Source of the DNA: Paragordius varius
Taxonomy: Eukaryota > Animalia > Nematomorpha
Reading direction: 5' to 3'
NCBI GenBank assembly: GCA_964247055.1
Contig: OZ176050.1
Coordinates: forward strand, 8,928,001 to 8,992,000
Length of the DNA stretch: 64,000 nt
Shown here: positions 6,888 through 48,054 of the stretch, piece after piece
How positions within the stretch are numbered: position 1 is the stretch's first letter
Layout: each line of letters starts with the position of its first letter
Position numbers and translations under genes: made by a program
The notes under the pieces: model-generated
The model's database searches: none
Seen by the model: only the letters and a program-made list of their open reading frames with translations
What the model was told of the DNA's origin: nothing

Positions 6888-8286
6888 TCTCTTTTTTTCT
6901 TTTTCATTCAAGAGTAAGGACGTAAATTGTATCAGGACTTGTGAAAACTTTAACACTCGCTTGCCTAAGACTAAAAATCATGATAGAAAAATTGTGCAGT
7001 TTCAGATTTCAAATTCTGCCACTCTATGCAGACAGTGTAGGAAGGCGGCATCCTACCTACTATACCAAATAAATTATTATACAAGTCATTAATATATTAT
7101 ATGTTATAATGACGCCCCTCTTTAAGGGATAATACACTTAACTTTTAACGATTCTATCTTTTAAACTAAGATTTTATTTAAAAATCAGAAAAGCAAAAAA
7201 TATATATTTAGTTTAGAGACACTATTTTTTGAAAGTTCATGGTAAAGGAGTCATTATGAGGGGAAAGGGGGCTATCTAATCATTTTATATTTAATTTCAA
7301 ATTATAAAAAAAACTCAATAAATTGACTGCATTTTTCACAAATATTACATATAGCAATCAAAACTAAACGGAGAATCTTTCGAATACAAACCCGGGTAAA
7401 ACAAGGGCATCATTTGTTGTTGTGGATCATTACTATTTTGGGCAAATGGATCCATCTGTTGTTGTTGGTGTTGTGTAATTTGCATTTTTTTCATAGCATG
7501 ATCAACTTGTTGGGCTTGGTGTCTCATTTGACGTCTTTTTGCAGCGCGCACAGCGGCAGCCGCATCCGTTACGCTTGAAAATTTGGTTTCATCTTCGTCC
7601 GTTTTGTCTGTTAGCATGTTAAATAAAAATGGAAAAAATAATATTTTACAACTTTAATTTAAAGTAAAAATTAAAATTATAGAAAATGTTCTAGTTCGAC
7701 TTCTTAAGCAGCATCATAAAAAATGTTAAAATAAGGTTGAATGGTTAACCTATCATAGATTGTCGATCAATGGTCTGCAAAAAATGAGCTAATCATTATA
7801 TATACCCTTGGCTCATATAAAGAGTTGAAATGTAATATAATCAAATATCTGATCAAGACGATAACAAATAATTGAAAAAATTTAGGCGAAATAAGATTTT
7901 ACAAGAACGAAAAAGTTAATGGTATTAAATATTGTAGAGAATCACTTTTTTCAAAAAATTTTTATAATATTTTAGAGACGCGTTTGTGTATTATGATAAG
8001 AAAAAACAATTAAAAGCAAATTTTACCTTTTAAATCAGCAAATCCACCGCCAATGTTTATGGTATCAAATGGTAAAGAATTCAAAACTTCATCATCGTAT
8101 TCGCATTCAGGAGAAATCAATTGGTGTTGGTCGATACCTAATTATCAAAATATTATAACTAAAATGAATAAGGTACAATATTATTTATAGTAAATTTCAT
8201 TAACACCATATTATATATAAAATAATTCAAGTTTTGCCGAAAACGAAGGCTACCATAAAACACAAGGTCCGAAACAAACTTAAAAC

Positions 8287-8354
<68 letters not shown>

Positions 8355-9689
8355 GTTTAGATTGAAAAAACTTGCCAAAAACGTACCCCTGTTATTATTC
8401 GGGAGAAAGAGTCTGGAATTCTGTTTATTGTGACAATGAACATCATTAAGGGTCTGTTTGTGCCCATGTTTGTGCGGTACAGGACCAGATGGTCCCTTTT
8501 GTAAACTGCCTGAAGGGACATTTATTTTGCCGCTTCGATCATTATTATTATTATAATGATTATTGTGTGGTAATTTTGGGTTATTGGATGTTTTTTGATT
8601 TGATTGAAGATAAGATGATTCCGATGATGAGGAACTGTTAGAGCTTTCGGAATCTCGGCAAACATTATCTTTCTTAACAGGTCGGTGATGATATTCCTCT
8701 ACAGTGTGGTTGTTTTTATTGAGAGATTTTGAGGGATGTCGACCACTTTTCATTACTTTATCGTGAGCATAGTTACTATCATTTATATTGTCTATTTTAT
8801 GATCCTAATTATGTGAAAGAGAGAAAGCTAATATTATCATCCCGAAAGAAAACGTGTAAAAAATTTATAAAAACAAAATAAATAGTTTGCTAGCATTCGT
8901 TGCGGTTAATAAAATACCATATTATTATATAAAAATTTTTTTGATAAAAATAATATTTTGATGCAAAAATATTTATTATAATGCGTATTAAAATGTAAAA
9001 CACAAATTATAATTGCTTCAAAATAAAAAAGGCAAAAGATTCTATTATTTCGAAAAACACGTAAAAGATAAAAAATAAACCTTTGAATTTTTATTAGATG
9101 CGGACACACCCTTAGCACCAGAAGTGCAGGTGGATGAAGAAATAATTGTAGAATTAACATCCTTATTGCTGTTACTTTTGTACGATTTCCGAGCTTTACG
9201 TTTACCTACGCCATTAGATAAATAATAATTGTTATGATTTGACGTTAGATTGCAAAATTATTTAAAAAAATGAAGAATATTGAATACTTGAACCGCTTCC
9301 AGAATGTCCGGAACCAACATGACTGGCCATACCTCCTGTACCAGGAACCAAATTATTTGTCATGATCCAACATATGACGCGACCGCTAAAGCTTGGTAAA
9401 CGCGTTTTGTCATCAACAATTTCCTCTTTAACTACACCAAAATCATCATCCATACTTTTGAAGAAAAACTTGTAATCACATGGATTAAGTTCAGAACTAA
9501 TATATTTTTAAAAATTTAATACCCGTCACTACCAGTTAAAGCTTGACGATCATGTAAAATAAATTGCTTTAAATGAGCAAGTGTTATAAAATCTGAAGCA
9601 ATCGGTAATTTTATGAGATATGGTGTCTCCTCATCATCTAGATGGTATATAATTTTGGTTTCTCCTGTGGGAGATACAATATCTTCCAT
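1031..9689 (-). CDS. dsh: Dishevelled (DIX-PDZ-DEP), ~15 exons, ~1190 aa as modelled
   Basis: DIX: [20 protein letters not shown]...[22 protein letters not shown]: FLGISIVG...[25 protein letters not shown]...LLVAKSW. DEP: [28 protein letters not shown]...[31 protein letters not shown]. Phase-consistent exons: 9689-9523, 9496-9288, 9205-9081, 8804-8387, 8137-8027, 7607-7392, 5860-5325, 4947-4707, 4328-4250, 3986-3722, 3493-3346, 2928-2758, 2331-2200, 2105-1920, 1605-1031. Low-complexity exons and the 3' end (1031 or 1195) are less certain. Confidence 0.95.
6860..6882. repeat. (AT)n microsatellite
   Basis: Direct reading; lies in a dsh intron. Confidence 0.9.
8289..8350. repeat. (AT)n microsatellite, ~30 units
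   Basis: Direct reading; lies in a dsh intron and produces the spurious IYIYIY tail of ORF 8280-8753. Confidence 0.95.
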
Positions 9690-10618
9690 ATAAATTTGAT
9701 TAAAAATTCCAAGCAAATGGTCAGCACATCAATAAGCAGTGGCACATGTTAAATGTAACGCATGCAAAATATGAATCCAAAAAAATCTTTGTATTTGGTA
9801 TATCAGCTATTTATATAACGTTCTTTTACTCAAGGATTTATCTAAAAATTTGAGCATATAGGATTATTATTTATATTGAAGGGTTTATTATTTTTCAAAC
9901 ATTTTAGCGAAGTATATCCAACAATGCAATGTTTCTAGTTCTAACCAAAAAATTATATTAATTAGTTTATGCGATGTTTATCAAGAAAAACTTAATAATA
10001 AAAACGAATAATTGTTTATCACTTTATGAGAGTACTATACTTCCAGAGCTATTAACTTTAATATTTAATTATACGTATAAATCTGAAATGCAAAGTAAAA
10101 TCCATTTTCCTCTCTATTTTCCTGCATTTTACAGTCATATTGAAATATATATTTTTTGATAAAAAAAATGAATTAGGATTATCATGTTGCTATCGGAGTT
10201 GGCATTACAATTAATTTAAGGAAGTTTTCTGCAGTTTAGAAGTAATTGCTGGATTGCACATTAAGGTTAGAACTAGTTTATTCCAAAAAAAGTGATTCAA
10301 TTGCAATGCGCATAAAAATGGGGGGAGGGTATAAAAAACATGCTATAAAATATATATTATGTTAGAAAAATTTGTTAGGATTATCACGGTTCTTTTGGTT
10401 TTGGTACTTACGAATGATATGAGAAACTATTACCATTTTTGTGGCAACTATTCCATATTAGAATATGGCAAAATTGCTTAATAATTAGCCTAATGTGCCG
10501 TTTTCTAAAATACACTAAACATACTATATATAAAATGCTAATCAATATTTTTATTTATTTTTTGGATGTGGACTTCGAAAACATCAAATTTCCTTCTAAA
10601 ATAGTTAAGTTTTTTTAA

Positions 10619-11110
10619 CACTTGGATACAACACATTTGTTTTCGTCCTTCGATTTAAATTGAGGTAGTTAAATACCCCAGGCCTGTTTAAAAAAAATTA
10701 TGGAAGGAATCGAAACCATGGCAAAGTTTTGCACTTATATAACATTAATAAACCGAAATATATAAAAAAATTATTAAAAAATACTTGATAATACTTATTT
10801 AATCTAAAACCGAAAGGTAAAAATTATGTCAACATGAAATGTGTGCTATAATTGAAAAATAATACAAAATATTTATTTCTAATGTTAGATGTAATTTTAA
10901 TAAAAAATTAGCTTTTATTTTGCACTTAAAATTAAATGAAGACCATATTTTGCAAAAATCCTGTAAAATGAAAATAGCTTTGAAGTAGTTTGACATGGAA
11001 CCTTTTTTTAAAACAAAATTTTATTATGATATTTTATATTTATATAACTTTTATTAGGATAGAAGCATAAATTTAAATTGGGACCGTTTCCTTCAGTAGT
11101 TTTTTAAAAA
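10619..11110 (+). mobile_element. Dispersed ~500 bp repeat family X (starts CACTTGGATACAACAC), probable non-autonomous DNA transposon
   Basis: Colinear similarity along its length to 46856-47380 and 47427-47880, and to the inverted copy at 46165-46547. Shared blocks include atggaaggaatcgaaac, ccgaaaggtaaaa, aaattaaatgaagac and gatagaagca...ccgtttcct.agtagtttttt. Confidence 0.75.
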
Positions 11111-16700: not shown

Positions 16701-17159
16701 TTGGTCAAACAATTTTACATTAGGGATTGAAATTATTGTTATTATACTTATTATATCAATGTAGAATTATTATTATAAATGTAATATAATATTTGGTATA
16801 AATATAATTGTTAAAATGTACTTTACCCCTCTAGTTTGTGGAAAGGTGATATATTTACGGTTATCTTTATTAGGACTTTTTAAAACATATGATAGCAGAA
16901 GTTTTTTGGTTTATGAGCCCTGTTTTAATTTATAAGGGAGGTCTAATGTGTTTGATGAAGTGATTGTGATTACTTGTTTTTATAATATTTTTTATTTTAT
17001 TTTTTATATTTCTTTTATATTATTTTCATTATCTATATATAGTAAAAATTGATTGCAACTTCGCTTCATTTACTTTTTGCGATTTGTATTAACCAGGAGT
17101 TGTTGTTGTTACTTTTTCATTGGAATATAAATTAGCTCACCTAGGTGCTTCTATCCTAA

Positions 17160-18812
17160 TCTATATATTTATAAAAATGGAAAATGGTGGCTTTGTGATC
17201 TGTTTCCGGAAAACCGGTAGACCCATTCAAATCCAAATGTCGAAAAAATATAATCATTAATGAATGCCCCGACAATAGCTTCGCCCTTTTTTGAATTAGG
17301 CCCCCAGTTCGGGCCCACCCCGTGGAATTCCACAAAAATTGTGTCTTTGAGACAATTTTCCGGAAAACATGTTGGACCATTTGATTTTAAATATAGTTTT
17401 CTTTTCTTTTTTTTCGATTGCGCCGAACATTGTCGGCTCGCTTTTTTATTTTAGGCCCTCTTTTTACCCGCTCCCCCTGTAAAATGCCATTTTTTTAAAA
17501 AAAATCAAGTCCACAAAAATAATTTTTTGAACCTATTTTTCTCCCAAGGTATGAGATCATAAAAATTCAATAAGGATTCCAGGTATTTCCCGTTAAAAGG
17601 CAAATTAATCAAGCGTTTTTTTCATATTGGCTGCCAGGTAAGGAGACACCCGCTAAAAACTGACCCGTCATATCGAAATAGAGTGCCTTTGAGACTAAAT
17701 TACAGAAAACTTATCAGGCCATATGAGTTTAATAGCTACTTAAAATATTACCCGTAACAAAGCAAAAATTTAGGTGCGGCTTTTTAAAATTAGCCCTCAA
17801 TTAGGCCCTTCACGCCATGGTAAATGCGTCGCCATAGAATGATTTTTTAGTTTTGCTAATGAGTGCATATGGAATCAATCATGATTCCAAGTATTCTCCG
17901 TAAAAAGGCAAAAATTCTAATCTAGCACTTTTTTGTATTAGGGAGCTAACCACCTAAAACTTCGCCACTATATCGAAATTGCGTTGTTTAGGAGTTTATT
18001 TTCAAACTTATCAGGCTTCTTTAATAAGGGCCTGAAATATTACCCGTAAAAAGGCAAAAATTTAAGTCCAGTTGTTTTTTTAATTAGGCCCTTTACCACC
18101 TAAAAAATGCGCTATCATTAAACTACTATTTAGTTTTGTAGCCATTCTTCCAAAAACTACTAATTTTACGTATTCCCTTATAAAGGCAAATTTTTTTATC
18201 AAACGTCTTTTTTATATTGGCCTCTGGTATAACTGTGCCACCATATCGATATAGCGTGACTTTGGAGCGAAATTTAGAAAACTTATCAGGCCATATGAGT
18301 TCAATAAAGACTTAAAATATAGCCCGTAAAAAGGCAAAAATATAAGTAGAGCGGTTTCATTAAATTACCCCTTAATTAGGCCCTTGCACTAAAAAGGCGC
18401 CACCATAAAATGACTTATTGGTTTTGAGGCAATTTTCCGAAAATCCCACGAGAGCATCTGGAATCAATAATGATTCCAGGTATTACCCGAATGGCAAAAA
18501 TTTTAATCGAGCGTTTTTTTGTTTCGCCCCTATATTCCTCATATAAGGGCAAAAATTTTGCCCAACACTTTTTTTACGTGCCCCTAGGTAAAGAGCTACC
18601 CGCCAAAAACTGCGCTACTATATATAAAATTGCGTTGTTTTGGAGCTAATTTACAGAAAAGTTATGAAGCCATATGAGCTCATTAAAAGCTTGAAATATT
18701 AGCCGTAACCAGGTAAAATAAGTTTAGGCGTTTTTTATTAGTCGTTAATTTGGGGCCTTTACGCCCTAAAAATACGTCAAATAACGATTATTTAAGGTTG
18801 AGAGATTTTTCG
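17160..18812 (+). mobile_element. Non-autonomous Helitron, 3'-truncated, with degenerate internal ~280-380 bp subrepeats
   Basis: 5' end A|TCTATATATTTATAAAAATGG is shared exactly with the copy at 36537. Similarity to that copy stops near 18812. The marker cttatcaggc recurs at 17710, 18007 and 18282, with a variant at 18661. Confidence 0.8.
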
Positions 18813-19145: not shown

Positions 19146-21281
19146 CAGTGGTGCTCGCCAAAAAAAGTTAAAGGGCCGCAAAAAACATTTATCTTGCAAG
19201 GTCCGCGGACCATATAACACCGTTAAAAATATCATAGCTGCTTGACACATTTCCAGATATTTTTACCCACAATAAGTATGTGAAAAAATTGATTATTCAA
19301 GGCCATAAATAAAAAACACTATTAGAGTCTCGGTTATCACTCTAGATCACTATGTCGAGAGATTTTGCGGGTGGCATACAAATCGTAACTAAAATGCCTC
19401 TTGTGCGATTTTGTTTAAAATATTTCGATAATATTAATTAAAAACCAAATAAGTGGACTAAATAGACAACAATTTCAAACAAATCTGGTTTAATATCATG
19501 GCAAGTCAATCTTAATACATTGTACATATCATCTATCAAGTCATTACTATATGTATTTTTAACATGTTTCATTTATATATATATGTTCTCGCATGTATAA
19601 GTTGAGGAGAAAACAGTGAAGATAAATTGAGCACATTTTTTTATTATTTTCTAATTGATTTGGCACATCTTGTTAAAATATACCTCTTCGCGATTTTATT
19701 TGTATTGATAAACAGAGCCGTAGCTTCTGGCGTCCCCCTCCCCTCCATGCGACCCCTTGCATTTTAAAAAATAATCAAATTCAAACCGTGGTCATGACTA
19801 GTCATAAATGGGTGACTTATTATGTATTACTAAAATATTGATATAAAACTAAATTTTAAAATCCGGCGCCCCATCAACTATGGCGCTCGGTGCTTCAGTC
19901 CTTCTTTCCCCCTCTAGCTACGCCTCTGTCGATAAATTCTTCAACAAAATGCTATGATCAAAGCATAATTGCTTAATATTTAAATCCATATTTCTTAATG
20001 GAGCAAATTTTATTTCTTCATCTGGAACCTGAATTTTAGTTAATTCTATTTCCATAATTAATGTGTTTTGAATGTGGGATATAGGAAGGTTTGACTTAAT
20101 TATTCCCCTTTATCTAATGTTGCGACTAATTGCTTATTTCCTTAAAGACGTTTTAAATATATATCAGTAATATCGTAAAGGTAGACCAAAATAACCCATC
20201 ATTTCTCATTAACCATGTCTTTGACAGGTTTATTCTTTTGTACATGTTAAATCATATTTTAATTCAAATATTACCTTAAACTCTACTCAGGCTTGTTTAC
20301 TTGTGTAAAAGTAAAATTAAATACTGGCTGTCATTTTTTTAACGATTCTACATCTATCATGGATGTGGTTAACTATATCGACCGCTGTTTTACTGAATGC
20401 TGGCGGATAAAACAAAGAAAGATTTTGGGCATTAACCCCTGATTTCCAATCACAAGGGACTGCCATGAATGCATATAGACGCCAGTTTTCTATAGAACCA
20501 ATATTATAGAAAATTAAATATAAAAAGTGTTTACCTTTCGTGTGGGCACGTTTTCGATTCCTCGTAAACTATGTTGTTATGACAAGATCTTACAATTAAT
20601 GCATATTAAAATGTGGAAGTAATATGAGATAAAATCAATAGCTATACTCTGATTATTTTTTAAGATAATAAATAAATAAATATTAACGTGTTTATGCGTC
20701 GAATATACCAAGCGGAAGTTTTTTTAATTTGCCTCATAATTTCATCTTTGCTACATTTATCAAAAAACGAAATCATTATTTAAACATTCTTTCACCAAAT
20801 AATAGGTTAAAGGCCTCCTTTTTTCAATATAACAAAATTTATGACATGCTATTGTTACAGCTCTTTCCCGTAAAAAGCTATGAACATAATAGTTCTTTTT
20901 GGTGTTTTTAATCTCTTTATACATTTCATGTCCTTGATATTTTCAGGTAATTTATGAGACAGATTTATATTAATCATTAATAGATATCATCCTTTTTGTG
21001 CGTCATTTTTAAAAAATTATACTAGAGAATAATATTTAAAATTTCATATATATATAGATATATATGAAATCGGATAATTAATATAGCAATTTTATTTCAT
21101 TATATAAGGGTAGTGAGTTTTTTTAAAAAATCAACAAAAAATTACAGAATAACAATATATAGATTCAGTTCAAATTAATCAGTTGTATGTGTTTTTTAAG
21201 AAATATTCAATAAACTTAAATATGAATAATTCAGGACCATGAAAGGCCGCATGCAAACCGTGGGCCGCTATTTGGGCACAG
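19146..21281 (-). mobile_element. Decayed hAT (Buster/SPIN/Charlie-like) DNA transposon with transposase remnants
   Basis: Ends are ctctagat|CAGTGGTGCTC...gggccgca and ggccgcatgc...gggccgctatttgggcacag|atctagct, in NTCTAGAN-like target context. Minus-strand remnants include LASICIHGSP..IGNQG (cf. LVSICTDGAPSM), TAVDIVNHI, FELKYDL and dimerisation-domain-like FSSTYTCE..MKHVKN..LRLTCHDIKPD. Many stops and frameshifts. Confidence 0.75.
19713..19928. mobile_element. 216 bp hAT-type MITE nested in the hAT remnant
   Basis: 13 bp TIR cagagccgtagct / agctacgcctctg (1 mismatch); 8 bp TSD ttgataaa / tcgataaa; GC-rich interior. Confidence 0.85.
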
Positions 21282-22381
21282 ATCTAGCTTGCACACAAAA
21301 GGATATTTAGCATAATGTGTGCTATTGGCCTTTCGATATGAAGCATTTACCATAAAAATTAACTTTCACAAATCACTCCTAAGATCTAAAATAATTACAC
21401 ATTGAGAATATTGATACATTTTTCCACCACGATATATTCACATTAAAACATTTTTTCACGGTGGGCGGATTATAAAAAAGTGTTTAACCAAATTTAAATA
21501 ATCTTTAAACTTTAAGCAAGCAAATTTGTTTATAATATCCAAAAAACTGATATATTAGAACCTATTTTGTTTAATAATAAGAATTAATTAATCGTAAAAT
21601 GGTATACATACAGATTTACAGCAAATTTTACAAATTACTTTTGTTTCAATTAAGTTTCTATTTTCAAAACTAGAAGTTTGCTTTATATATTTTATAATTA
21701 TATACAATACACACATATTTCATATAATTCAAGAATTAATTAATTTTATTTTAATTATGGGTGCTATTTGTTCAAACCAAAGGTTATATGTATAAAAATA
21801 TAAAATGTAATGACGTTTATCCTTGTAGTCATCACATATTATTACACAGTGCGCACAAAAAAATAAACAAAAATGATTTTTATCTAGAATAATAAGAAAT
21901 CCCTTGGAAAAGAAGACCCCAAAAAATTTGGGGCAAAAACGCGCCCTAAAATGGAAATATTCCATTTTTTCATTTTTGACTAGAAATAAATTTTTGTCCA
22001 TATTTTTTAATCTTATCGAGCAAACATTATAAAATTTTTATATATTATATAAAACCTAATATATTCTTAAGAAAAATACATATAATAATTTTAAAGTACT
22101 AATAATTTTTTTTATTCCACAAAAATAGAAATTCGAAAATTTCATGAAATTGTCGAAATATATTATAAAAAAATTATTTGTAAGAACTCCATATTGTTAT
22201 TATTATTTAAGTTTATGACTAATATATAACATACCAAAGAGTTGCTATATATAATAAAGGCTATGTATCTTTTTAAGTGCCTAGAAAAATTTCTATTTTT
22301 TCAAAAATTTTTGCAATTTTTGTTGAATTTTCATCATATGCTGATCATTGATTCATAAATACATTATTGCGCAATTTTTAA

Positions 22382-24306
22382 ATGCGATTAAAAAAAAAAC
22401 CAATAAAATTTCAAGATTATGAAATTCCCATTACTTTGGATACAGGTATATATATATTGTTTAAAAATCTAGTTAATAAATTTAAATGCAAAATAAATAA
22501 AGACCTTTTCTGCTATATATGTGGAAGGTATCATCGCCCTACAAATTTGATTAAAATAACTGAACCGATAATTAATATTTATAACTTATATTTTGCTGAG
22601 AAATTACTTCATTACAAAGAAATATGGGCCCCCAGCAAGGTTTTTATATTATTTATAATAAATCTTACACATTAACTAAACTGTTCTGTTCAGGTGTGCA
22701 AACAATGTGTTGGTAGCCTTTCACCCTGGTATAATGGGAAACATGGAAAAATGCCTTTTACAACCCCTACAATTTGGAAACCTCAGAAAAATCATTTCAA
22801 TGGTTAATTTATTAGTATATTTACAGATTGTTTATTTTGTTTCTTAGATCAACCAGTCATTAACATGAAAAAAGGAAATAAAACATTAATATATCCTGAT
22901 TTAGAATCGGCCAGGCGGCCTAAAAAAATATTAAATACAGTTCCCAAGCCTCCCATACAAGAGAATCTAATGGACTTAATAAAAGATACCCAAGACGATG
23001 GTAATATATAAGTTAATCATAGATTTTATTCCGATCGAAGATGAGAATAATGAATCAAGATGCTCTTCTGAGCTGAGTAATATAGCCAGGTCCACAAGGC
23101 TAAGTATCAGGCAAACCGGGATACTGACAGAAAAAATACTTAACATGAACGTGAATATTGATGTTAAAAAAAGTCAATATAGAAAAAGAAATAAACATTT
23201 TGATGATATATATAATACTGAAAACAATATATCATATTGTATTGATCTGCCAGTTTTGATTGATAAATTGGCAATCACCTATACAGATGATAGGGATTGG
23301 ACGATATTTATTGATGCAAATGAAGTAATTAAATTTATTAATTTGATAGAATAGTTACAAAGTAATATTGCTCAATAAACAATCTAAGTATCCGCCCATT
23401 ATCCTAGTCTATAAGGCTAAACTATATGGGGATAAGGAAACTTATGATCTTTATAAAAAGATGTTGGATAGGTGTCCGAATCGCAATCACTACTCCTTGA
23501 TTGCTGATTATAAAGTATAACATTAAATAATTTTTAGGTTTTATCTATATGCCGCGGTTTGAAAGGCGGTTACCCTACCTACGCGTGCCTTTTTTGCCTC
23601 TTTAAATCTAGAGATAAGGCAAACCATTACAATTCAAATCATATATACCAACCTAGAACGGATGATGTCATAGGTATATTTTATTTTAAAATATACAAGG
23701 TACTTATAGCCTGGACAGAATCCCATTGATTAAAATGGACAACATGATGATTCCTCCCTTACATATTAAATTGGGGCTAGCCCGCACTTATATAATTAAT
23801 ATGCACAAGGGAGGACCAGCCTACAATTTTTATTTAAATATGTTCAAAATTAATCCATCAAAATTGGCCGCAGGTTATTTAACAGGCCCTCAAATAGAAA
23901 GACTATTTGATTCGGATGCCTTGTATAACTTAATGAACCCTACTGAAAAAAGAGCATTTAATGCTTTTAGAACTTTCAGTAGGGAATTTTTAGGAACTTA
24001 TAAATCTCTGAATTATCTATCTCTAGGAGCCGAAGTAGTTGACTCCTATAAAGTTCTAGGTAAATATTTGATTTTTAAAACTTATCTTTAACATTTAATG
24101 TTATTTATATATTTTTAGGTGCAAATATGTCCATAAAACTGCATCTTGTGGATAAGCATCTGGACAAATTCCCCCGGTGGAGGGCAACAGACCAGGATGG
24201 GGAACGGTTCCACCAAACACTTAAACACATAGAAAAAAATTATAATAGTTCCAATAGTATCCACATGATTGGTGAATACTATTGGAATCATTTTATGTCT
24301 GACTAA
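22382..24306 (+). CDS. Chapaev3/CMC-like DDE transposase, apparently intact, 9 exons, 554 aa
   Basis: Spliced product contains FCYICG, WAPSKVCKQC, MPFTTPTIWKPQKNHFNDCLFC, WTIFIDANE (D1), LIADYKVL...GYPTYACLFC (D2), IPPLHIKLGL, GPQI, GANMSIKLHL and DQDGERFHQ (E). Introns 22446-22472, 22640-22693, 22803-22826, 23001-23022, 23325-23349, 23515-23537, 23674-23699 and 24060-24118 give 1665 nt with no internal stop. The family name is from recalled motifs, not a database search. Confidence 0.85.
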
Positions 24307-24314
24307 TATATTCA

Positions 24315-24482
24315 TTATGTATAAATAAATTTAAATTCTTATGTATAAATATATTTTAATTCTTATGTATAAATAAATTTAAATTCTTATGTATAAATAT
24401 ATTTTAATTCTTATGTATAAATAAATTTAAATTCTTATGTATAAATAAATTTAAATTCTTATGTATAAATAAATTTAAATTC
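24315..24482. repeat. Minisatellite, 7 x 24 bp (ttatgtataaataaatttaaattc)
   Basis: Direct reading; two variants in the order A-B-A-B-A-A-A, starting 8 bp after the transposase stop codon. Confidence 0.95.
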
Positions 24483-24494
24483 TTATATGTATTT

Positions 24495-24770
24495 GAAGTG
24501 TTGTTGTTGGGTTAAAATATCTTCAGATATGAAGCTTGTCGTATTATTTTCTCCAAGAAGTGCGATCAAGAGCATCCTTAATGTTTATATTTATTATTTT
24601 TTTGAGTGCATGGTAGCTTTTCCATGTTTGTGTGATTCTATCTATGATAGCCTCAGTTACGCCACCGTTGGCAGTAATAATGTGACCTAGATGTTTGAAT
24701 TGAACAACTGATTCATAATCAGATTCATTGTGTATTGTATGGTTGGAAGTGTTTGAAGATTTTAAAATTT
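24495..24770 (-). mobile_element. 5'-truncated, internally deleted RTE-like non-LTR retrotransposon fragment
   Basis: Minus strand reads ESVVQFKHLGHIITANGGVTEAIIDRITQTWKSYHALKK...ALDRTSWRK*, resembling the region after the RT domain and the C-terminal A.DR..WR of RTE elements. It is followed by a short (caa)n tail. Confidence 0.65.
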
Positions 24771-24819
24771 TGTAGAAACCTAATTAAATATTCTTACTAT
24801 AAAAAAAATGCTAAAAATT

Positions 24820-25304
24820 CTATCGAATGAATATAAATCCATTTATTATCAGTTTTTCAATATATATAATTGTAATAATTGTTTGATTTATAATTTGAGC
24901 AATAGTTTCTGGATGTCAGAATATTTTTATTTATATATATATCATCAAAATGTTTATTTCTTTTTCTATATTGAATCTTTTTAGCATCAATATTCACGTT
25001 CATGTTAATTATTTTTTCTGTCAGTATCCCGGTTTGCCTAATATTTAGAAGATATATTATAATTAATATAATTACCTTGCTGGGGGCCCATATTTACTTG
25101 TATTAACTAATCAGCAAAATACAAGTTAAAAATATTAATTATTGGTTCAGTTATTTTAATCAAATTTGTAGGGCGATGATACCTTCCACATATATAGCAG
25201 AAAATGTCTTTACTATGTTATTAAACAATATATATATATATACCTGTATCCAAAGTAATGGGAATTTCATAATCTTGAAATTTTATTGGTTTTTTTAATC
25301 GCAT
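24820..25304 (-). pseudogene. Inverted, deleted and frameshifted copy of the 5' part of the transposase gene
   Basis: ATG at 25304 gives MRLKKPIKFQDYEIPITLDT. A deletion just before the FCYICG codons shifts the frame. A second deletion of ~430 bp joins intron 2 to sequence matching 23105-23210. A faint W.IFID-like remnant lies near 24830. Confidence 0.9.
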
Positions 25305-25858
25305 TTGAAAATTGCGCAATAATGTATTTATGAATCAATGATCAGCATATGATGAAAATTCAACAAAAATTGCAAAAATTTTTGAAAAAATAGAAATTTT
25401 TCTAGGGACTTAAAAAGATACATAGCCTTTATTATATATAGCAACTCTTTGGTATGTTATATATTAGTCATAAACTTAAATAATAAAAACAATATGGAGT
25501 TCTTACAAATAATTTTTTTATAATATATTTCGACAATTTCATGAAATTTTCGAATTTCTATTTTTGTGGAATAAAAAAAATTATTAGTACTTTAAAATTA
25601 TTATATGTATTTTTCTTAAGAACATATTAGGTTTTATATAATATATAAAAATTTTATAATGTTTGCTCGATAAGATTAAAAAATATGGACAAAAATTTAT
25701 TTCTAGTCAAAAATGAAAAAATGGAATATTTCCATTTTAGGGCGCGTTTTTGCCCCAAATTTTTTGGGGTCTTCTTTTCCAAGGGATTTCTGGAAGAACT
25801 ATCCGTCTCTAAAAATATTTATCACATGTGTAAAAAAGTATGTTCAACAATTTTTTGT

Positions 25859-27977
25859 ATGGCTAAGCGTGAAACAGTCGATCTTTTAAAAATAACTAAA
25901 AAATTAAAAACTTTTAGCAAAACCAAAAAATCATGCTCACTGCCAGAAGGTTTGACCGATAGTGAAATAGGTCTTACAGACTACTATGTCGAAAATGGGC
26001 TACAAAAAGTTTATCCATACTTTTATAAGTTTCATTCCTATTGCAAAGGTCGATGGATTGATAGAAAACTTTTGGATGTTTATCAAAATGAGTTTCGATT
26101 GTTTTCTTTGCAAGAATATGTATTAACTACTTAAATTTATAGATTGATAAAGCAGAAAACGGGTTTCTTACGGTAAATAACAAAAAAGTCTCTTTAGATT
26201 ATGTTCTTCAAAGTAATGACACACTTCAAAGCCTAGTCCACCGTCATGAAACACCCGTTCTTCCTATATCTCCCAAAATATTGGTTAACAACAACGATTA
26301 TGTTGTTGTAGATAAGCCATCCTCTATTCCAGTATCAAAATTTAATTATTTAGGTTCATCCCTGTGGGAATTTTCGATACAACTCATTGACCAGCATTTT
26401 AGCCAAAAATTATGATATTAATAACTTATATTCCATGCATAGGATAGATCGATTGACTTCCGGACTTGTAATTTTTGCCAAGAATATTAACGCATTTAAT
26501 AAAATTCAATCCAATATGTTGGCTAAAACTACACTCAAAGAATATCTATGCTTGGTCGAAGGGATTTTTCCAGAGTAATTATTGTTTTTTCGTAATTTTG
26601 GAGACATATAGGAAATTTAATATTATACTTTTAATAGGATAGTAAGTAAATAGTTTGTTTTCCATTAACAAGTTACCTATATGGTATGATGTTAAAATTG
26701 TTGTTCAAGAACACCAATTTGATGTGTACAAAATTTAACAATAGTTTTAAATTAAGGGATAGTTTTTAATGTGTTTGGCGGTTTTTTACTACTCGAGATG
26801 CTAATTATTGTTTTTTCCATCCAACGTCCTATTTTATTTTATAAGTAAAATCAATTACTTGTTTGCTATACCCACGCTTTACATGTCTATATTGATTTAT
26901 TTTAGGCATATGGTCACTTGTGATAAACGTTTAAAAATATTTTCTTTCAAAATTGGAATTTCAGCCGTTGTAAATAGCAATGAAGAGGATGATGACAAAA
27001 ATACCGTTGATACGGATGTTGAGAAACCACAGACAGGGAAAGACGCTAAAACCACATTCCAAAGGATAGCATTGGTAGCTTACATCAGGGATTCGAAAAA
27101 ATCTAGTCCATCAAACTCTTCAAATGCCATAGATGTCAAAATCTTTAGTTTAGTTAAATGTCAACCTTTGACTGGGAGGACACATCAAATACGAGTACAT
27201 GCACAATACTTGGGTCATCCTATCATTAATGATCCCTTGTATAATACCGTGTTGGGTTGGGGACCCGAAAAAGGTCGAAATGCTCAATATAATGGTAGAA
27301 CTATTAACCAAGTCGTAAGAGATTTGATTGTTAGTGGAAATTATGATTTACAGAGCAAATTACGTGGTAGTGATGGTCCTGAAACAACACCAGAAAATGG
27401 AAAAGATGTGGTTAATGTTAATTGTGATGAAATAAATGATGAAATTATAGAGAAACCTTTTTGGTATGAACCTTCATGTTATGAATGCAGATATGAAATT
27501 AAAAAACTCAGAAGCAAAGCCTGTGAAACTCCAAATAATGATAAAGTAAAAAAATCGGAATATCGATTTGAATATGAGTTACCCATGTATCTTCACTGTT
27601 TTCGTTATAGCGGGGATGATTGGACCTTTCAAACACAAATACCGACATGGGCAAACACACCAAACATAGGAAAGTTTGTTGACAAAATTCCTCAAGACCT
27701 AAAAAACGATAATCCTACCGACAATACTGAAGATACCGATATACCAGAAAATAAAAAGGAAAATTCTTGCTTTGAGCTTTTACATCCAAATTATACTCAT
27801 TATAATGCAATCATTGATGCTCTACAAAATAATAGGGATGCACTTAATTATAATGACACCCAATATGTTTATATTTATGATGACACTTTAAAATCAAAAA
27901 ATACCAAGAATGATATTGTGATTTACCCAGAAAATTATAACTCATTATTAAGACATTTATGCCATAAAAATCAATAA
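25859..27977 (+). CDS. RPUSD2: RluA-family RNA pseudouridine synthase, RPUSD2-like
   Basis: DYYVENGLQKVYPYFYKFHSYCKGRW, DKPSSIP|VHPCGNFRYNS, catalytic HRIDRLTSGLVIFAK and PLTGRTHQIRVH..LGHPIINDPLY. Introns 26120-26142, 26332-26353 and 26575-26905. An in-frame upstream ATG exists at 25685, inside the palindrome arm. Confidence 0.93.
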
Positions 27978-28472
27978 ATTTCTTCAAATTTGTTTAAAAT
28001 ATATGAAGCATTAATATACCATATTGTGCAAATTCAGGGTTTTATTTTAATTAACATTTGTGAGAAAATATGCAATTTTTTCGTTAATTGCTGGCAAATT
28101 ACATTTGAAATCTATTAGCTCTATATTTATATAAATGTATATATGCAATCGTTTTAAGATATGAACGTTTGGAAAATATATCTTGACCTATATTCTTAAT
28201 AATGGATTTGATCAAACATAGATGATTAAAAATTGTTTTATTAAAATGTCACACAAAACTAATATTTTTCAAGAATAAAGTTCATCGCTAAAAACGATAT
28301 ATCACAATTCAACTTTAATGGATCTTTTGATTGAATGCAAAAATGGTAAATATTATCAAATTTTAATTTTTTCCCCATATTTTTTCTGTGGTATTTTTAC
28401 CTCAATATGAATAAATAAATAAATATATTTATTTTATTTGCTATAATTGAGAATTTAAAGCTATATGCTTGA

Positions 28473-29471
28473 TTACAAGACTTCTAGGTCCACATGCCTC
28501 ATTTCAGGATGTTTTTTCTAAACAAAAATATAATTAACACCTCATGCAATTTAATAAGCATATTTTTAAATAAAATAACGGATGTAATTATAAATATAAA
28601 TCCATATATCTTAATTGTTTTCTTGTTAATGTATATCAAAAGTATGATTAAACTAACGGTATTACAAATAACTAAAACTTAAGTGTCACCCCTTAATCAT
28701 AAATAATATTTAAATACGCGATATAAAATAAATTAAATAAAATGGTGTAAAACCAAAATGATAACAAAATAAAATTTTATAATTTTTATGTCATTGTTTA
28801 ATTTAGTATCCTAATCATTTACAACATTTATTTTAATAGTGCCAATTGGCTGGTTTGATCATAAATGATTGGAAAAAAAATAAAAAAATGGTTTTGTAGT
28901 TTCTAATTTTTAATGGTGGCAGGAAACTAAATTCAAAATTTCATAACTATGTGTTTGAATTCACACATTTTTTTTCATGACTTTCAAGCTAGGGCTAGCG
29001 AGTGCAAAAGCTTTTATGTATACAGTAATAATTGCGATTTTTACTTTTATGAGACTAAACACGGTAAATTTTATAATTATTTAATAAGTTACTTTAAGGG
29101 TTTGTTCTATCCTATCTATTTCTGCACCAAGCAAATCGACAATATTTTCTCCATGCTTTAGCATAAAAGCTTCCACTTCCATCGTTTCTTTCATACTTTG
29201 CATTTCCTAATTAACCAAATATTGATGAAAAAATACTTAAAAAAATTAATGTTTATATTTATACTTATTAAAAAATATTACTTTTAACAGTGCCATAAGA
29301 TCTTGAGTGTCCAAATATGCAAGGCTAATTTCACGACCATCAATATCAACTTCCGCTTTAAATTTAACTAAATTGCCTCCCATTGTAGTGGCTTTGACAT
29401 CATGGACAGCCCTAAAAAATACATCAAGAGTGGAAAATCAATCATATAGTATTTAATGTTTAAACCGGTGA

Positions 29472-29510
<39 letters not shown>

Positions 29511-31672
29511 TACCAAATTGAAGGAATACACATATTAATAGGTTTATGCTAAACGCATTTTTTGAAAAACAATGTTGATAATTATTAATGCATAAATTTA
29601 GGGAACAATCTGAGTTCCGAACATCTAAGTTTAAAAATCGACGTTTTCAAAAAATTTCATTGTAGAATCAACATAACATACCTTACCATAACATCATTTT
29701 CTAATTCACGCACAATTTGTTGCTGAGATTTCAGAGGTATTGATCTAGGATAAAAAATGTGTGAAAGAAAGTTGTTTAAACACCTGTAATACTGAAAAAC
29801 ATTACGACTTTTTTATATATGCCATATAAAGTATAATATATTTCCCGTTATAAATATCTAAATATCTAAAAAGTTTTTAGGTCAGACGCCAAATATGTAA
29901 TTCAAATAAAAAAATAAATAAAAAATATGTTATCAATAACTACTTTCCAACCAGGGCAGTACTATTTGAGTATATGATGAAGCTGGCTACAACACCAAGT
30001 AATACACCTATTGAGAGTGATCCGATAGCATCATATATGGGTATAATGTTTGAGCTTATACTTTCCTGTCCCGCCTGGTCAACGACCATAGAGGCATTAT
30101 AATGATGTGAATGGAAATAATTGAGCGTTAAACACACAGATGCAATACTAACCCCTAAGACAGAGGCTAAATCCTCCAACAATAAAACATTTACGCTTGG
30201 GTCTTGTCCCGATAAAACTGTATGTAAAGTGTGGAATGGATATATAACATTTAATCAAAATTGAAAATCATATCATTTGTTTAAAAACAACATTCTTCCA
30301 CTAGTATTAACATTGACACTTAAAAACAACATCCATTAATATCCTTCAATCAAAAACAATATATATTCTGTGAAGGTTTATAAAACCGAAAATATTAAAT
30401 TAATAAATTGGTATTGTTTGTTAGTTTTCGATAATTATACATGTGTAAACTATTAATTAAGATTAAAATAAGGGTTTTTGAAGGATAACGTAATTTAAGA
30501 CAAAAAATATTAAGTTGAAAAAAATGGTTTTAAGTTAATTATGATAATTGTTAAAACCAAAGAATCATCCTAGTTTGATTTTTATTTAATTAAAACAGAA
30601 GAAATGATGAATGTTAACCATATTGCAGCACTGTTTTCCCATCTTTTAGAGCATTTCGACGCACAGATTTTAATGAAAGCAATAATGTTGCGCCTTCGGA
30701 AACAAATGAACATGCCAATATCATAAATACCTAAGGTATCATTTTTTAAAAATATAATTGTTCAATAACAAGCGAAAAATATTAATTTTAAATCCAATTT
30801 ACGCAGATTTAAAAATAAATAAAAGTCATATTTTGATAATACCCAATTTAGGCTTTCTACTGTATGAGGATCAAGAATGGCTGTTATTCCGTGATATATT
30901 GAAAGGCCACATCCAAAACAGAATATACCGACTCCACTTATGAGAGAAGAAACATATTTCATATTCATATATCCATAACTAAAAAATCAAGCATTTTCTT
31001 TAGTAATTTTTATATATTTTATTAGATAAATATTTCTTAATCTTGATAAAAAAATTCAAAAATAAATGATATAAAAAAATACGGGTGTATTGTATCTGCC
31101 TTTTTGTGGGATGCTTTGATACCAACAGCCAAAATTAACTAAATTACAACATAATTATATAATATATTTTCATCATTTCAAATATTCAAGTAATTGCACA
31201 TGACTAATAATAATTACCTGATTAACGGTATCTGCTAATGAATGTATAGCTTCAGCGAATAAACTGTGAGATCCTGTGTAAAAATATGCGATAGTTTTGC
31301 CCACAAAGTTGCAGAAATTTCTATATAAAAATATATATCAAATAGTTTTAAAAACGATTGCATCAATTAGATATGTAAATTATTTTTGTTTGCTAAAGTT
31401 TAAAGGTAAAAACTAAAATGTACAATTAAACAAATTTGATTGGTACTGATTTTATATACATCTAAATACAATAATAGTTCAGCGCAAAATATCCATTATT
31501 CCTTGTATATTTATAATTAGTCAGATGTACAGATAAAAGTTTTTAGGTTAATCTATATATATATATATGTGTGTGTGTGTAGAAACAATTAACAGTTATA
31601 TAATTTAAATATGTTATTATGTGTTTAGTTAACCACTATTTAAAATACATAACCATGAGATAATTTTCTAAC

Positions 31673-31716
<44 letters not shown>

Positions 31717-34342
31717 TTAAGCTTTCCTACATGCAAAACCTCAAAAAATATTTGATTTTACCATTATATGTTAGTAGCATACCAATAATATATAACACTG
31801 TTCGGCAAAAATGGGGCTAAAAAATAAAGGTTACTGAATCATATATCATTTGATAAAGTTTCAGTCTTAAAATGCTATATACCGTTAAAATACTTAAAAA
31901 AAGTTTTTTATATTTTTCGGTCATTAGCCAAAATTAAAAATCGCATTAAGATCTATCGATCTAATTTAGTGTTTTGGGAAATTTTTATCTAAAGCCGGTA
32001 TTGAAGGCCAAGGAGCCAAAAATATATAATCTAGATTTTGGGTAAGATGATAGATCTATTTATCTGCATCGAGAAAATGTGTTTATAATATATTGGATGA
32101 TTTCCATACACCTTTGGTGCAAATTATCGAAAAAAAAAATTTTAAGGTCTAAATTGTTTGAAGGCGATATATTGCGTTAACCTATTTATAGAGGTAATAT
32201 ACGATTGTTTTATAAAAATAAAATCTTTTACCGCGTATTAACAAGTTTTTATGATTCAAATTTGCATGCATTTTTTATATTCTTGTAAGGCTTTCTAGGA
32301 CACTCGGATAAAAAAAACTTTATTGATAATATTTTGCGTTTCTATTTTATATTTAAACAAATAAAGCGTTTTCATCTATTGCATTTAAATTTATTTGACC
32401 TAATATGCAATAAAAATGCGATTTTATGATGTTAGCTAATGACAGAAAAATTTAAATAACTTTTTTCCTAACATTTTAACCGTATATATCATTTCAAAAT
32501 TTATTATCCTGTATTTTTTAGCATCTAATGATATATAATTCATTACCATTTATTTTTTGCTAAACATCGTGTAATATGTAAATTATCCACTATTTTAGTG
32601 CATTATATAGAGTTTTAACTTTGACTGCGATGTAATGCGTTTTCCTTTAAATAAAATTAATATTAAGTGATGGTAAAAATTTTTATTCAAATTTTATCAT
32701 ATTCAGATAGATATTATTATTATATTAATGAAATAAAACCAATTATAACAGTTAATTTCATTTTTGTTGGGCTAGACTAAGTTACAACATATATTTTACA
32801 CATTTATGGTAAAAATAACTGCTTATGACCATGAATGACAGCATTTAACACCATTACCTTTTTAGGTAGTTTGATATCGCATAGCTTAGAATTTAATATG
32901 CTTTCTTTAGCCTTTTAAGCGCATTTACCAAATTTTTTTATTGAAAATGTAAACCATATCTGAAACTTTTTTGCCGCCAATTTTTTCCATAAATTTTTTA
33001 TATCGCTAATGCAACAGGCATATAGATGTATATTATGAGAAAATGCAAATAATAAACTTAAAAAAGTTTTCAGGCTACATTTTACCAGCAAAAACTTAAT
33101 ATATTTTGATTTTAATATCAGCTGTTGATTTCAATCGTATGGGGCTGTCCCAATTTTAGTCTCCAGAAGTCACAAACTGTAAAAAATATAATATATCTTA
33201 TAAAAACAATGTTTGATAATTTTATTTTGACAAAAATAACATTCAAAACTGTAGTTTATTACAAAATTGAGCTCTGGTATATAAAACTATATTCCAAAAG
33301 GTATACTAGGAAAAAAAAGTAAAAAGGTATTGAAGTGTAAACTGTCATACCGCTTATTATTTTTGACCGATCAAAATGTGAACTTTTTAAAATTATAAGT
33401 TAAGAAATTTTACGAATAAATAAGTTAATCTAAAAATGCCATTTAAGGAATAATTAAACTCACATTGTAACTGCGGTCCAAATGATAAAAGATGTATCCC
33501 TAAATCGAGAATATGGTAACGATACAGTAGGTTGGGCCGTAAGGAGAAGTGGACTAGACTAAAAATTTGACATTATAAATAAAATATTTACTGGTGGAAT
33601 TGTGGTTTGTCTTATGTCGGCAGATATGTTAGTGTAACGTTGTAAACCTATGATTCCCAAATACTTTTTAAAAGCACGTGATAATGATGGATATTCTACA
33701 TTTAATTAACTGAAATAAACTATTGAAATCAAATTCTTTTATTATGGTTTCTTCTCGGCGTTTTGCGTGCTCTTTTGCCAGTTTTTCCATACTCCCCCAA
33801 ATTTGTGTGGCTCTGAAATAAAAAAACTAATACCTTCGTTCAATGTCGGATCTCAAGTAAACATCAATTTTTCGATATTCATACGGGCTCCGCCTCTGAA
33901 ACACGGGTAAATCCTCTAAATCCCTTTGAAATATCAAAATAAAATATACTTTGGCTTCAGTAAATATTCGCTCATTGCTCGCACTGCAGTAAGAAAATTT
34001 CGATCTGTATAGGTTTGATTGTAGTCAATCGATTTTTTCCTCTTCATTTTTGGTAAAACAGAGTAATAATATAACTATATACCTTTTACGATTGCATCCA
34101 CCATTTTCGTAGTATCCGTTTTTTGATCTGAATAGTTGCATTGTTGTATATATTGAACGGTCCGTAAATGAACCTGGATTAAAAGTTTGGTGTTGTTAAT
34201 AATGTGCCTCTGTACTAAAAACATATGTTATTAGTAATGTACGATATCCGTATGGTAAAACAATAATATCGCAAAATTTAAATTATATTACTCTCTTTTT
34301 TAGACTATTTCGGTGTTTTTTTGATTTACCCTGCAAACTCAT
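28473..34342 (-). CDS. SLC30A9: Zinc transporter 9 (SLC30A9/ZnT9)
   Basis: NFLTAVRAMSEYLLKPKDLEDLP..RRSPYE..VYLRSDIERRATQIWGS, TGSHSLFAEAIHSLADTVNQ, YGYMNMKYVSSLISGVGIFCFGCGLSIYHG, LLEDLASVLGV, AVHDVKAT...FKAEVDIDG and terminal KHPEMRHVDLEVL*. The start codon and one 5' junction are inferred. Confidence 0.95.
31678..31714. repeat. (AT)n microsatellite
   Basis: Direct reading; SLC30A9 intron. Similar tracts lie at ~29478-29505, ~36639-36668, ~39639-39681 and ~41787-41808. Confidence 0.9.
31796..33337. mobile_element. Possible ~1.5 kb degenerate DNA transposon filling the large SLC30A9 intron
   Basis: taa|CACT...AGTG|taa ends with only a 4 bp terminal match; contains a repeat family Y copy at 33045-33185. 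Boundaries are weakly supported. Confidence 0.3.
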
Positions 34343-34728
34343 AACTAAATTCCACGGTGCCCACAAAAAATGACCAAATATATATTCCAATATATATATA
34401 TAGCAGGGTTTTCATGGTGCGCATAATTTTGTCCTTATGAGAGTTATAAAAAAATATTTACAATTTTGGGATAATTATTTCAAATCAATGAATTGTCCAC
34501 ATTTTTAATTTTAAGGTAAAATCTAAAAACTTTTTTCCAAAATATATTAACATTCATTACAGTTTTATTTATTTGTACCGATGATTTGTGGTACTTTTAT
34601 ATCACAGGGCCATTAAGCATGTTTATAAACTGCTAATTTGAAAGTTTTTTTGGTTTAAACTTAATAGCAAACATTGGTCTCCTTGGATAAAAAGTTTATA
34701 TTTTTTAAAAGATTCTTAACTTCTATAT

Positions 34729-34790
34729 CAGGGCTGTCCAACGTACGGCCCTCCAAGACTTTATGTGAGGCCAGAAAAAATTTAAATCCG
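34729..34790 (+). mobile_element. Solitary hAT-type left terminus
   Basis: cagggctgtccaacgtacggccc resembles the TIR at 60222; no partner end was found. Confidence 0.45.
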
Positions 34791-35145
34791 TAATTTGCAA
34801 CAATATGCTCATTTAATCATAAAAATATCAATTTTTCTCAAATAAATATCCAGAATAAGTCTAAACTTTTTTTCGCAACGATCTGAAAATGTGATGTTGT
34901 GTTTGCATTTTACAGTCTTATGTTCAAAATCTGAAACCGGAAGCCTAACATATATTTTTTAAAGTAAAGTATTCTTTAAATATAAATTCGCGGTTTAGCC
35001 TCTCTAAATCATTTGGAAGTTGTGGAAGTAGTGTTTTAATATTAAATGATTTAAATTTAACATCAAAATATAATGCTTTAGCAAAATCTTTTTTATTCTC
35101 ATTAAAAATCAATTTGATATCGTTAGGAACATATATATAAAAGTA

Positions 35146-36537
35146 CTAGCATAAATCTCGTGCGGCTACGCAACCAGAAGAAGTCCTTTGGACTTCTGGG
35201 GGAGGCTATTTGAAAAAAGGGACAATTAAATGATCCATATAGGTGGATTATTTCGAAACATTATTTACTAGGTATGATCTCACAGGATAAAACGTTGCAT
35301 TCATACTAATATTGTTTACTGATGTAAAGGCCCCAAATTGACGGCTAACGAAAAAAACCGCTATACTATAATTTTTATCTTTTTATGGGTAATATTAACA
35401 GCCTTTATTGAACTCGTATGGCTTCTTAGGTTTTTTAAATTCTCCAGAGCCACGCCATTGTATGGCGTTGCAGTTTTAAACCGGCAGACCCCTACTCATA
35501 GGCCTATATGGAAAAAGCAAAGCGCTAAGTTAAATTTTTTGCCTTTATAGGGAAAGTATTTGGAATCATCTTTGAGACGATCGTCTCATGGGTTATACGA
35601 AAAAATACATCAACACTAAATGATCGTTAAATGATGGCGTATTTTTAGGGAATAAAGGCCCCAAAATAGCGGCTAATAAAAAAGGCCTGACCTTGACTTT
35701 AAATGAGCTCATATGGCATAAGTTTTCTTTAAAATAGTTCCAAAACAAAGTAATTCTATATAGTGGCGCAGTTTTTGGCGGTTAGCTTACTTAGGGCTGA
35801 TACAAAAAAGCACTTGATTAAAATTTTTGCCTTTTTACGGAGAATATCTGGAATCCTTATTATTCCATATGCTCTTATTTTTTTGGAAAATTGCCTCAAA
35901 ATTAAAAAATCATTCTATGGTGACGCATTTTATAGGGCGTGAAGGGCCTAATTACCGGTTATTTTAAAAAACCGCATAAATTTTTGCCTTGTTACGGGTA
36001 ATGGTTTAAGCAGCTATTGAACTCATATGGCCGGATAGGTTTTCTGAAACTTAGCCCCAAAGGCACGCTATTTTGATATAACGGGTCATTTTTTAGCGGG
36101 TATCTCCTTTTTAACATACCTGGAATTTCTAATGAATTTTTACGGTCTCATACTTTGGAAAAATAGATTCAAAAAATTATTTTTGTGGACTTAATTTTTT
36201 GAAAGTGGCATTTTACGGGAGGGGCGGGTAAAAAGAGGGCCTAAATTAAAAAAGCGGCCGGATGTTCGGCGCAATCGAAAATAACTAAAAAAATCATATT
36301 ATCGAATGCTCCAACACGTTTTCCGGAAAATTGTCTCACACGATTTTTGTGGACTTTTTTTTAAAAAAAGGGTTTTTAACACGGGGTAGGCCCGAACTGG
36401 GGACCTAATTCAAAAAAGGGCCTATTGTCGGGGCATTCATTAATGATTTTATTTTTTCATTTGGATTTGAATGGGTCTACCGGTTTTCCGGAAATAGATC
36501 ACAAAGCCAGCATTTTCCATTTTTATAAATATATAGA
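35146..36537 (-). mobile_element. Full-length non-autonomous Helitron (1392 bp)
   Basis: Minus strand has a 5' TC terminus preceded by A and a 3' CTAG followed by T. A tgcg-tagc-cgca hairpin lies 11 nt before the CTAG, and there is no TSD. The body is colinear with 17160-18812 and 48055-48558. Confidence 0.88.
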
Positions 36538-36636
36538 TTATCTCTTATCTTCTATTTATGAAAACTTACTTATTTATTTTAGCGAGGCTTTAAGGTGCAA
36601 TAGTCTACATTAAATATAAACAAATGATGTGTTTCG

Positions 36637-47880: not shown

Positions 47881-48054
47881 GGCGTATTCAGATACCCTAA
47901 TAATCAAAGTATTAAAACTTAAATTCAGTAATTCCTTAATATAGTATTTAACTTTGAGCAAAGTTTTTTTAAAAATACAAGAGAAGCAGTTTTAACTTTA
48001 TATTTTAGAATGAACCAGAAAAAAGAATAAATGGGAATTTTATAATGATAAATG

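Follow-up and report, generated by a model that had tools for sequence, protein, structure and literature searches.

A complete transposase gene that faces an inverted and partly deleted copy of its own promoter and first exons raises the question of how such a palindrome arose and whether it moves as a unit. The case treated here lies in a 64,000-nucleotide stretch of the nematomorph Paragordius varius (assembly GCA_964247055.1, contig OZ176050.1, positions 8,928,001 to 8,992,000 of the forward strand), referred to below as the window and numbered from its first letter. An earlier note on this DNA had placed a palindrome at 21895-25791, and had proposed that it was a mobile element with long arms, a self-regulating locus, or a domesticated gene duplicated in inverted orientation. 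Our analysis points towards the first of these: the region 21845-25830 is probably a single Chapaev3 DNA transposon of 3,986 bp, with long arms derived from its own 5' region.

A transposase gene facing an inverted copy of its 5' part

The inverted repeat lies where it had been reported. A repeat search of the window returned an arm pair at 21895-22396 and 25290-25791 (502 nt each, 99% complementary), and no further copy of either arm was found elsewhere in the 64 kb. In a gapped alignment, 21895-22681 pairs continuously with 25791-25032; the pairing then skips to 23100-23235, which matches 25048-24913 at 89% identity. This alignment agrees with the previous description of the right side as an inverted, deleted copy of the promoter and 5' exons: the counterpart of 22682-23099 is gone from the right arm, a 25-nt deletion covers the intron-1 acceptor, and the copy of exon 2 carries frame-breaking gaps. 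The arms do not diverge evenly. Their outer 549 nt differ at 4 positions (99% alike) and their inner 291 nt at 25 (~91%; Fisher p = 8e-9), the change from one class to the other falling within intron 1, where a TA run and the 25-nt gap lie. The initial 80 nt of each arm (21895-21975 in the window) contain two short palindromic motifs, CCCCAAAAAATTTGGGG and ATGGAAATATTCCAT, which are possible protein-binding sites.

The gene on the left had been described as an intact, spliced transposase gene, and a complete model could be built for it. Nine exons (22382-22445, 22473-22639, 22694-22802, 22827-23000, 23023-23324, 23350-23514, 23538-23673, 23700-24059 and 24119-24306) add up to a reading frame of 1665 nt that opens with ATG and closes with TAA, or 554 codons, and arithmetic on the exon lengths gives consistent phases. 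The eight introns between 22446 and 24118 are all GT-AG and measure 27, 54, 24, 22, 25, 23, 26 and 59 nt, so that six of them fall within 22-27 nt. Such host-style micro-introns are unusual in a transposon gene; the host DNA has a GC content of 27%. Most Chapaev3 transposases are reported to be encoded by a single exon, and those of Merrow and Garfield by two (PMC4079192).

Family membership was established from homologous proteins. Pfam searches with each exon piece, and a phmmer search of PDB with exon 8, gave no match. Exon 8 alone matched 457 proteins in an all-protein HMMER search, the best of which were 34-41% identical. Alignment of 23 full-length homologues yielded the consensus motifs WxEPxxHxxDCYFC, LFIDxS, CxDxKV followed after 19 residues by PCxLC, LLPPLHIKLGL, HxxxxH and SDExGERFHQ, all of which are encoded in the window, where they include FIDAN, IADYKV followed after 19 residues by CLFC, PPLHIKLGL, HLVDKH and DGERFHQ. 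Chapaev3 elements are characterized by C(2)C, LH and H(4)H motifs, CAC...GTG termini and a 3-bp TWA target between A and T (PMC4079192). The three motifs are present here as CLFC (exon 7), PPLHIKLGL (exon 8) and HLVDKH (exon 9), aligned with the family consensus and with profile positions. Furthermore, FIDAN, IADYKV and DGERFHQ match the consensus at the predicted acidic triad, in which D323 of the alignment is nearly invariant. PPLH was considered as a degenerate form of a DxxH catalytic motif, which was rejected since it is itself a conserved motif of the family.

A family profile built from the 23-homologue alignment was run against stop-free pieces only. The nine pieces tile it in order over positions 2-546 of 566, the sole gap being a variable linker. 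Exons 2-4 match profile positions 2-140, the part corresponding to the N-terminal zinc domain, and the N-terminus of the profile matches the RAG1 N-terminal fragment 21wb_A (E = 0.0028), in agreement with the "Chapa" domain that Kapitonov and Koonin described as shared between RAG1 and Chapaevs (PMC4411706). The catalytic core may also be RAG1-like in fold, judging from the AlphaFold model of one relative, P0004 (pLDDT 82), which is 37% identical to exon 8 of the window. Nearly all of the 43 Foldseek matches of this model with E <= 0.001 are to the RAG1 core, two being to the P element transposase; the best are RAG1 chains (E ~1e-6, TM-score 0.35-0.43), with HzTransib next at 1.5e-3.

Ends of the element and its copies

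The earlier note had found no right-hand terminal inverted repeat or target-site duplication, and had taken the flanks to be unrelated beyond 21895 and 25791. These limits were drawn too narrowly: two transposon tips lie outside them, and the repeated family already covers position 21872, which extends the unit by 89 nt. The left tip starts with CACAGTG (21845-21851), a perfect heptamer of a recombination signal sequence (RSS), and the right tip ends with the palindromic CACATGTG (25823-25830), where the heptamer reads CACATGT inward (25824-25830). Both tips read CAC inward and adjoin a TWA trinucleotide. Counting both strands, the window would be expected to contain about 2.1 copies of CACAGTG, and it has CACATGTG only once; from the base frequencies of the window, the chance of finding either heptamer within 60 nt of an arm end was calculated by hand as ~1e-3 to 3e-3. 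The inverted repeats stop short of these termini, the arms beginning 50 nt inside the left tip and 39 nt inside the right one, so that the two distances differ by 11 nt. Outside the heptamer, a gapped comparison gave no alignment between the tips, and inspection by eye for a nonamer-like motif 12 or 23 nt from the heptamers gave nothing convincing. The left flank reads A-TTA and the right flank TAA-A, so that both trinucleotides are of the TWA type but are unequal, and there is no 3' T on the right. A CAC-type tip was located where none had been seen; the lack of a clean target duplication stands.

Relatives were compared with the element in these traits. The element L002 has CAC...GTG ends, a TAA/TAA target-site duplication in an A..T context and inverted ends of only ~130 nt, and consequently the 0.8-0.9-kb arms of the window element are derived. 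Its gene-upstream end is ~10 nt longer than the other, from the tip to the first shared inner block (L002 regions 1-170 and 3226-3415), as in the window. A second relative, L006 (1-300 and 2376-2673), has CACAGTCC ends, TAA/TTA flanks that are inverted and not direct, and a different spacer offset. With two relatives checked, the unequal-end trait is supported in part and is not universal. In a third case, L001, the element ends are absent from its contig.

Public contigs, among them those of run X1 and of a second sample, S2, represented by run X3, were placed on 21000-26900. In run X1 the summed contig depth, which is not a copy number, was 47,700-55,900 on 21788-22181 and 27,800-36,000 on 25334-25727, compared with flanks at ~370-740 (left) and ~590-1,070 (right); in the outer arms the depth is roughly 50-100 times that of the flanks. 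Values for the 3' half of the gene were 7,000-11,000, and those for exons 3-5 were 360-1,600, or roughly 1-3 times the flank. The arms are common to many elements and the full gene is present in about one copy. At 21872, outside the palindrome, the depth was still ~75,800 in 27 contigs, against the ~370-740 of the left flank. In contigs from other insertion sites homology ends at 21840 (X6, organism C) and at 21857 (X1); the loss at 21840 is what further insertions sharing this target preference would produce. The ends of unitigs at 21866 and 25818 were considered as repeat boundaries and rejected, since unitigs also break at heterozygous sites (bubble at 26158-26322). Joints 22179>25218 and 21865>25224 link arm to arm and indicate short foldback derivatives. 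A metagenome scan for the arm start returned 0 loci, and the ORF that reads outward across the left tip (21729-22001, minus strand) had no candidate match in a collection that evidently does not include ORFs of this genome.

The inner architecture of the palindrome could be followed in the second sample. Depth was 293 over 24485-24630, the junction of minisatellite and spacer, and 276 over 24876-25084, which spans the junction of spacer and right arm together with the internal deletion point, whereas single-copy contigs stood at 64-85; contigs of the gene's 3' half (23644-23910 and 24012-24294) lay within 271-315. At about four times the single-copy depth, the inner junctions would be present in about four nearly identical copies, which favours movement as a unit and speaks against a local accident, a domesticated gene and an assembly error. 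The element looks like a mobile unit and not like a domesticated gene. In the same run, 22 of ~800 letters in a contig of the host flank (25847-26643) are unlike the window, as opposed to 1-3 letters in the contigs that cover the inner junctions and the 3' half of the transposon; the element is more similar between the two samples than the adjacent host gene is.

Coordinates of all features are collected in Table 1. The minisatellite in the spacer was confirmed, and its copy number differs between family copies, as seen from the contig joints 24331>24483 and 24338>24486. Repeated AATAAA motifs occur in it directly past the stop codon. Other copies join parts of the gene to the spacer (joints 23195>24465 and 23617>24843). 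The label of RTE fragment that had been given to the remainder of the spacer could not be verified: apart from a likeness noted by eye, its 79-codon open piece has weak Atlas leads only (DUF6451 at 0.90, RVT_1 at 0.87), and Pfam and protein searches with this reverse-transcriptase-like piece gave no match.

Table 1. Features of the transposon and its right-hand neighbour, in window coordinates.
Feature	Position	Strand	Description and basis
Left flanking trinucleotide	21842..21844	.	TTA, preceded by A (Chapaev3 A-TWA context); sequence, TWA rule of PMC4079192
Left tip	21845..21894	+	CACAGTG and 43 nt absent from the right end; contig depth
Left arm	21895..22681	+	487 nt of upstream region, exon 1, intron 1, exon 2, start of intron 2; repeat search and alignment
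Chapaev3-type transposase gene	22382..24306	+	Splice sites, phase arithmetic, profile tiling, 457 exon-8 homologues
Exon 5 part retained inverted in right arm	23100..23235	+	89% identity
Minisatellite	24310..24486	.	24-nt unit, 7.3 copies; copy number varies among family copies
Central spacer	24487..24912	-	426 nt; 79-codon open piece 24783-24547 (- strand), by eye resembling the tail of a non-LTR (long terminal repeat) retrotransposon ORF2
Right arm	24913..25791	-	Decayed inverted copy of exon 5 part, start of intron 2, exon 2, intron 1, exon 1 and upstream region; equivalent of 22682-23099 deleted
Right tip	25792..25830	-	32 nt and the CACATGT heptamer; 11 nt shorter than the left tip
Right flanking trinucleotide	25831..25833	.	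TAA, of TWA type, unlike the left TTA; sequence
RluA-type pseudouridine synthase, host gene	25859..27977	+	Open reading frames (ORFs); PF00849, E = 7.5e-6

Origin of the arms and competing explanations

In what is probably a single Chapaev3 transposon, the 3' subterminal region is no ordinary short inverted end but a decayed, inverted copy of the element's 5' region (upstream DNA, exons 1-2 and part of exon 5), to which a genuine right-type tip is attached. The rearrangement may have begun within the ordinary short inverted ends of the family, where template switching or gap repair would have copied the left end inward in inverted orientation and lengthened the ends to ~0.9 kb. The right arm is 5'-like inside yet has a right-type tip, and homology starts exactly where the tips end; this fits inward copying from ordinary ends, and not a second element lying upside down. 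The outer part would then have been kept nearly identical by gene conversion, from arm to arm or from copy to copy, while the inner part decayed, and the counts of 4 mismatches in 549 nt and 25 in 291 can be read as a recent outer conversion over an older duplication. Many non-autonomous foldback-like derivatives carry the same arms and could be mobilised by this copy or one like it.

From the model of a mobile element with long arms that hold the promoter and first exons, the core is retained, in keeping with the CAC...GTG tips, the arm depth, the derivatives and the multi-copy inner junctions. It had to be amended in its length, in its tips, which are not inverted past the heptamer, and in the superfamily, Chapaev3, which had been left unnamed.

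Several observations weigh against such a transposon. The flanking TTA and TAA differ and the right one is followed by A instead of T, so that no single clean insertion is demonstrated. The unequal trinucleotides may be due to a point change or to recombination between family copies, the latter as documented for Galileo (PMC2775673). The copy number of the right tip (25792-25830) is not resolvable, the bin 25728-25924 averaging only ~8,000, and contigs fitting both arms were counted on both. The arrangement is supported by contigs across separate junctions, and a second full copy with both tips was not seen directly among the public contigs. Finally, L006 indicates that the rules for the ends are looser than L002 suggests.

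The unequal flanks would suit a composite, in which an intact element is accompanied by a separate, internally deleted member of the family, inverted beside it or inserted in its tail, and the whole is not mobile as a unit. The public contigs show an abundant family in which rearranged copies occur often, which would also suit this explanation. We nevertheless consider it unlikely. The region holds a single left-type and a single right-type tip, with neither a CAC heptamer end nor an arm start in 24307-24913; a second copy that had simply been inverted would not have the right-type tip that the 5'-like right arm bears; and the inner junctions are at about four copies in sample S2.

Similarly unlikely, and compatible with a single Chapaev3 transposon, is a self-regulating locus, in which read-through from the gene or a promoter in the right arm would give hairpin or antisense RNA that silences the transposase, in the manner of Mu killer. 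In maize, Mu killer is a separate non-autonomous locus whose hairpin RNA, produced from a flanking promoter, silences MuDR (PMC3440606). Like the present locus, it duplicates part of a transposase gene, namely 5' sequence with the terminal region, in inverted orientation; in the present case the duplication lies within the same element as the intact gene. The geometry suits such a device, with an upstream region that is 99% identical between the arms and present in two copies facing each other. However, the AATAAA repeats after the stop may end read-through (weak evidence in DNA of 27% GC), and only ~230 nt of the spliced mRNA would pair with the right arm, exon 2 doing so at ~92%. A more specific version, in which the mirror arm is the working part, its promoter copy firing toward the gene so that antisense or hairpin RNA throttles what appears to be the sole full-length autonomous copy in cis, is improbable. 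If it were true, a built-in cis-acting Mu killer would let a master copy persist beside tens of foldback derivatives.

That the inversion arose in the assembly, from mis-joined reads of a repeated family, is very improbable. Such an error might be favoured by the high repetition of the arms and by the many breaks in short-read contigs across the region, but independent contigs from the two samples cover the left flank and tip (21444-21866), the right tip and flank (25818-26187) and the inner junctions (24485-24630 and 24876-25084), and arms of just 0.8 kb are well below the length of long reads. Least probable of all is the inverted segmental duplication of a domesticated, host-serving gene of transposase origin, for which an intact-looking gene, host-style micro-introns and gene-rich surroundings might speak, and which is contradicted by the family-type transposon tips, by arms at many times the flank depth, by the deletion derivatives, and by closest database relatives of no more than 34-41% identity over exon 8, with no orthologue series visible.

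Comparison with known systems and neighbourhood

Chapaev3 DNA transposons were reportedly treated by Kapitonov and Jurka in 2008, and Yuan and Wessler are said to have put them in CMC in 2011. Families of the group include Merrow, Garfield and Conan (PMC4079192), and the group has been placed as a clade of the Transib superfamily (PMC4411706). The element described here shares with it the C(2)C, LH and H(4)H motifs, a DDE-like triad, an N-terminal zinc domain of the RAG1/Chapa type, CAC...GTG termini, TWA at both ends and a protein of ~550 residues. It differs in its eight introns of 22-59 nt, in arms of ~0.8-0.9 kb made from its own upstream region and exons, compared with ~130 nt in L002, and in flanking trinucleotides that are not identical.

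Long and dynamic inverted ends are known from Galileo, of the P superfamily, and from Foldback-like elements (PMC3573991, PMC4168063). As in those elements, an autonomous gene lies between long arms, many short derivatives consist of arms only, and the length and structure of the arms vary among copies. The present element belongs to another superfamily, its arms are not internally repetitive and consist of a recognisable pseudo-copy of promoter and 5' exons, and its outermost 39-50 nt are not inverted repeats save for the heptamer.

With the signals recognised by RAG1, Transib and ProtoRAG the element has in common a perfect CACAGTG at one tip and ends that differ by 11 nt, measured from the heptamer to the first shared sequence, as well as a predicted RAG1-like fold, modelled for the family on relative P0004. 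Unlike those signals, its ends have no recognisable nonamer, and the distances are 43 and 32 nt instead of 23 and 12. Only structure and the N-terminal domain reveal a sequence relation to the RAG1 core.

The group itself is already known, and the extension of inverted ends is known in principle from other superfamilies. Three features are unusual here: the long inverted arms, for which the element's own promoter and first exons supplied the sequence, the micro-introns of host style, and the perfect RSS heptamer that one of the tips carries. The copy looks complete and is possibly autonomous, and it belongs to the transposon branch that is architecturally closest to RAG1. It would therefore offer a pair of substrate and enzyme, with ends one helical turn apart and many non-autonomous partners, in which to ask how RAG-like enzymes distinguish unlike ends. 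It is also a case for asking how long inverted arms arise and stay alike, and the palindrome would be a clean example of an element that drew on its own promoter and exons to lengthen its inverted ends.

A spliced Chapaev3-type gene is also found at 5001-6944 of L005, from another organism (GCA_042850755.1, 32-39% GC). It is flanked by rearranged inverted repeats at 1376-3598 and 8609-10797, ~2.2 kb per side and 88-100% identical; these repeats, in pieces of 1-2 kb, could not be tied to a Chapaev3 element.

On its right side, 28 nt separate the transposon from the first plausible ATG (25859) of the RluA-type gene (window 25831-25861). This gene must now be transcribed from or through the transposon arm, and an open frame at 25685-26134 leads from the right arm into it. 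Elsewhere in the window, two other repeat families, unrelated to the transposon arms, occur as direct and inverted copies that are 76-99% identical (17150-18730, 35350-36540 and 48050-48560; also 10600-11110 and 46170-47880). On the minus strand, at 1031-5855, a sign of an animal host is an ORF with a PDZ domain (5319-5855, E = 6e-9), accompanied by a weak DEP match (1031-1627) in the order that a Dishevelled gene would have.

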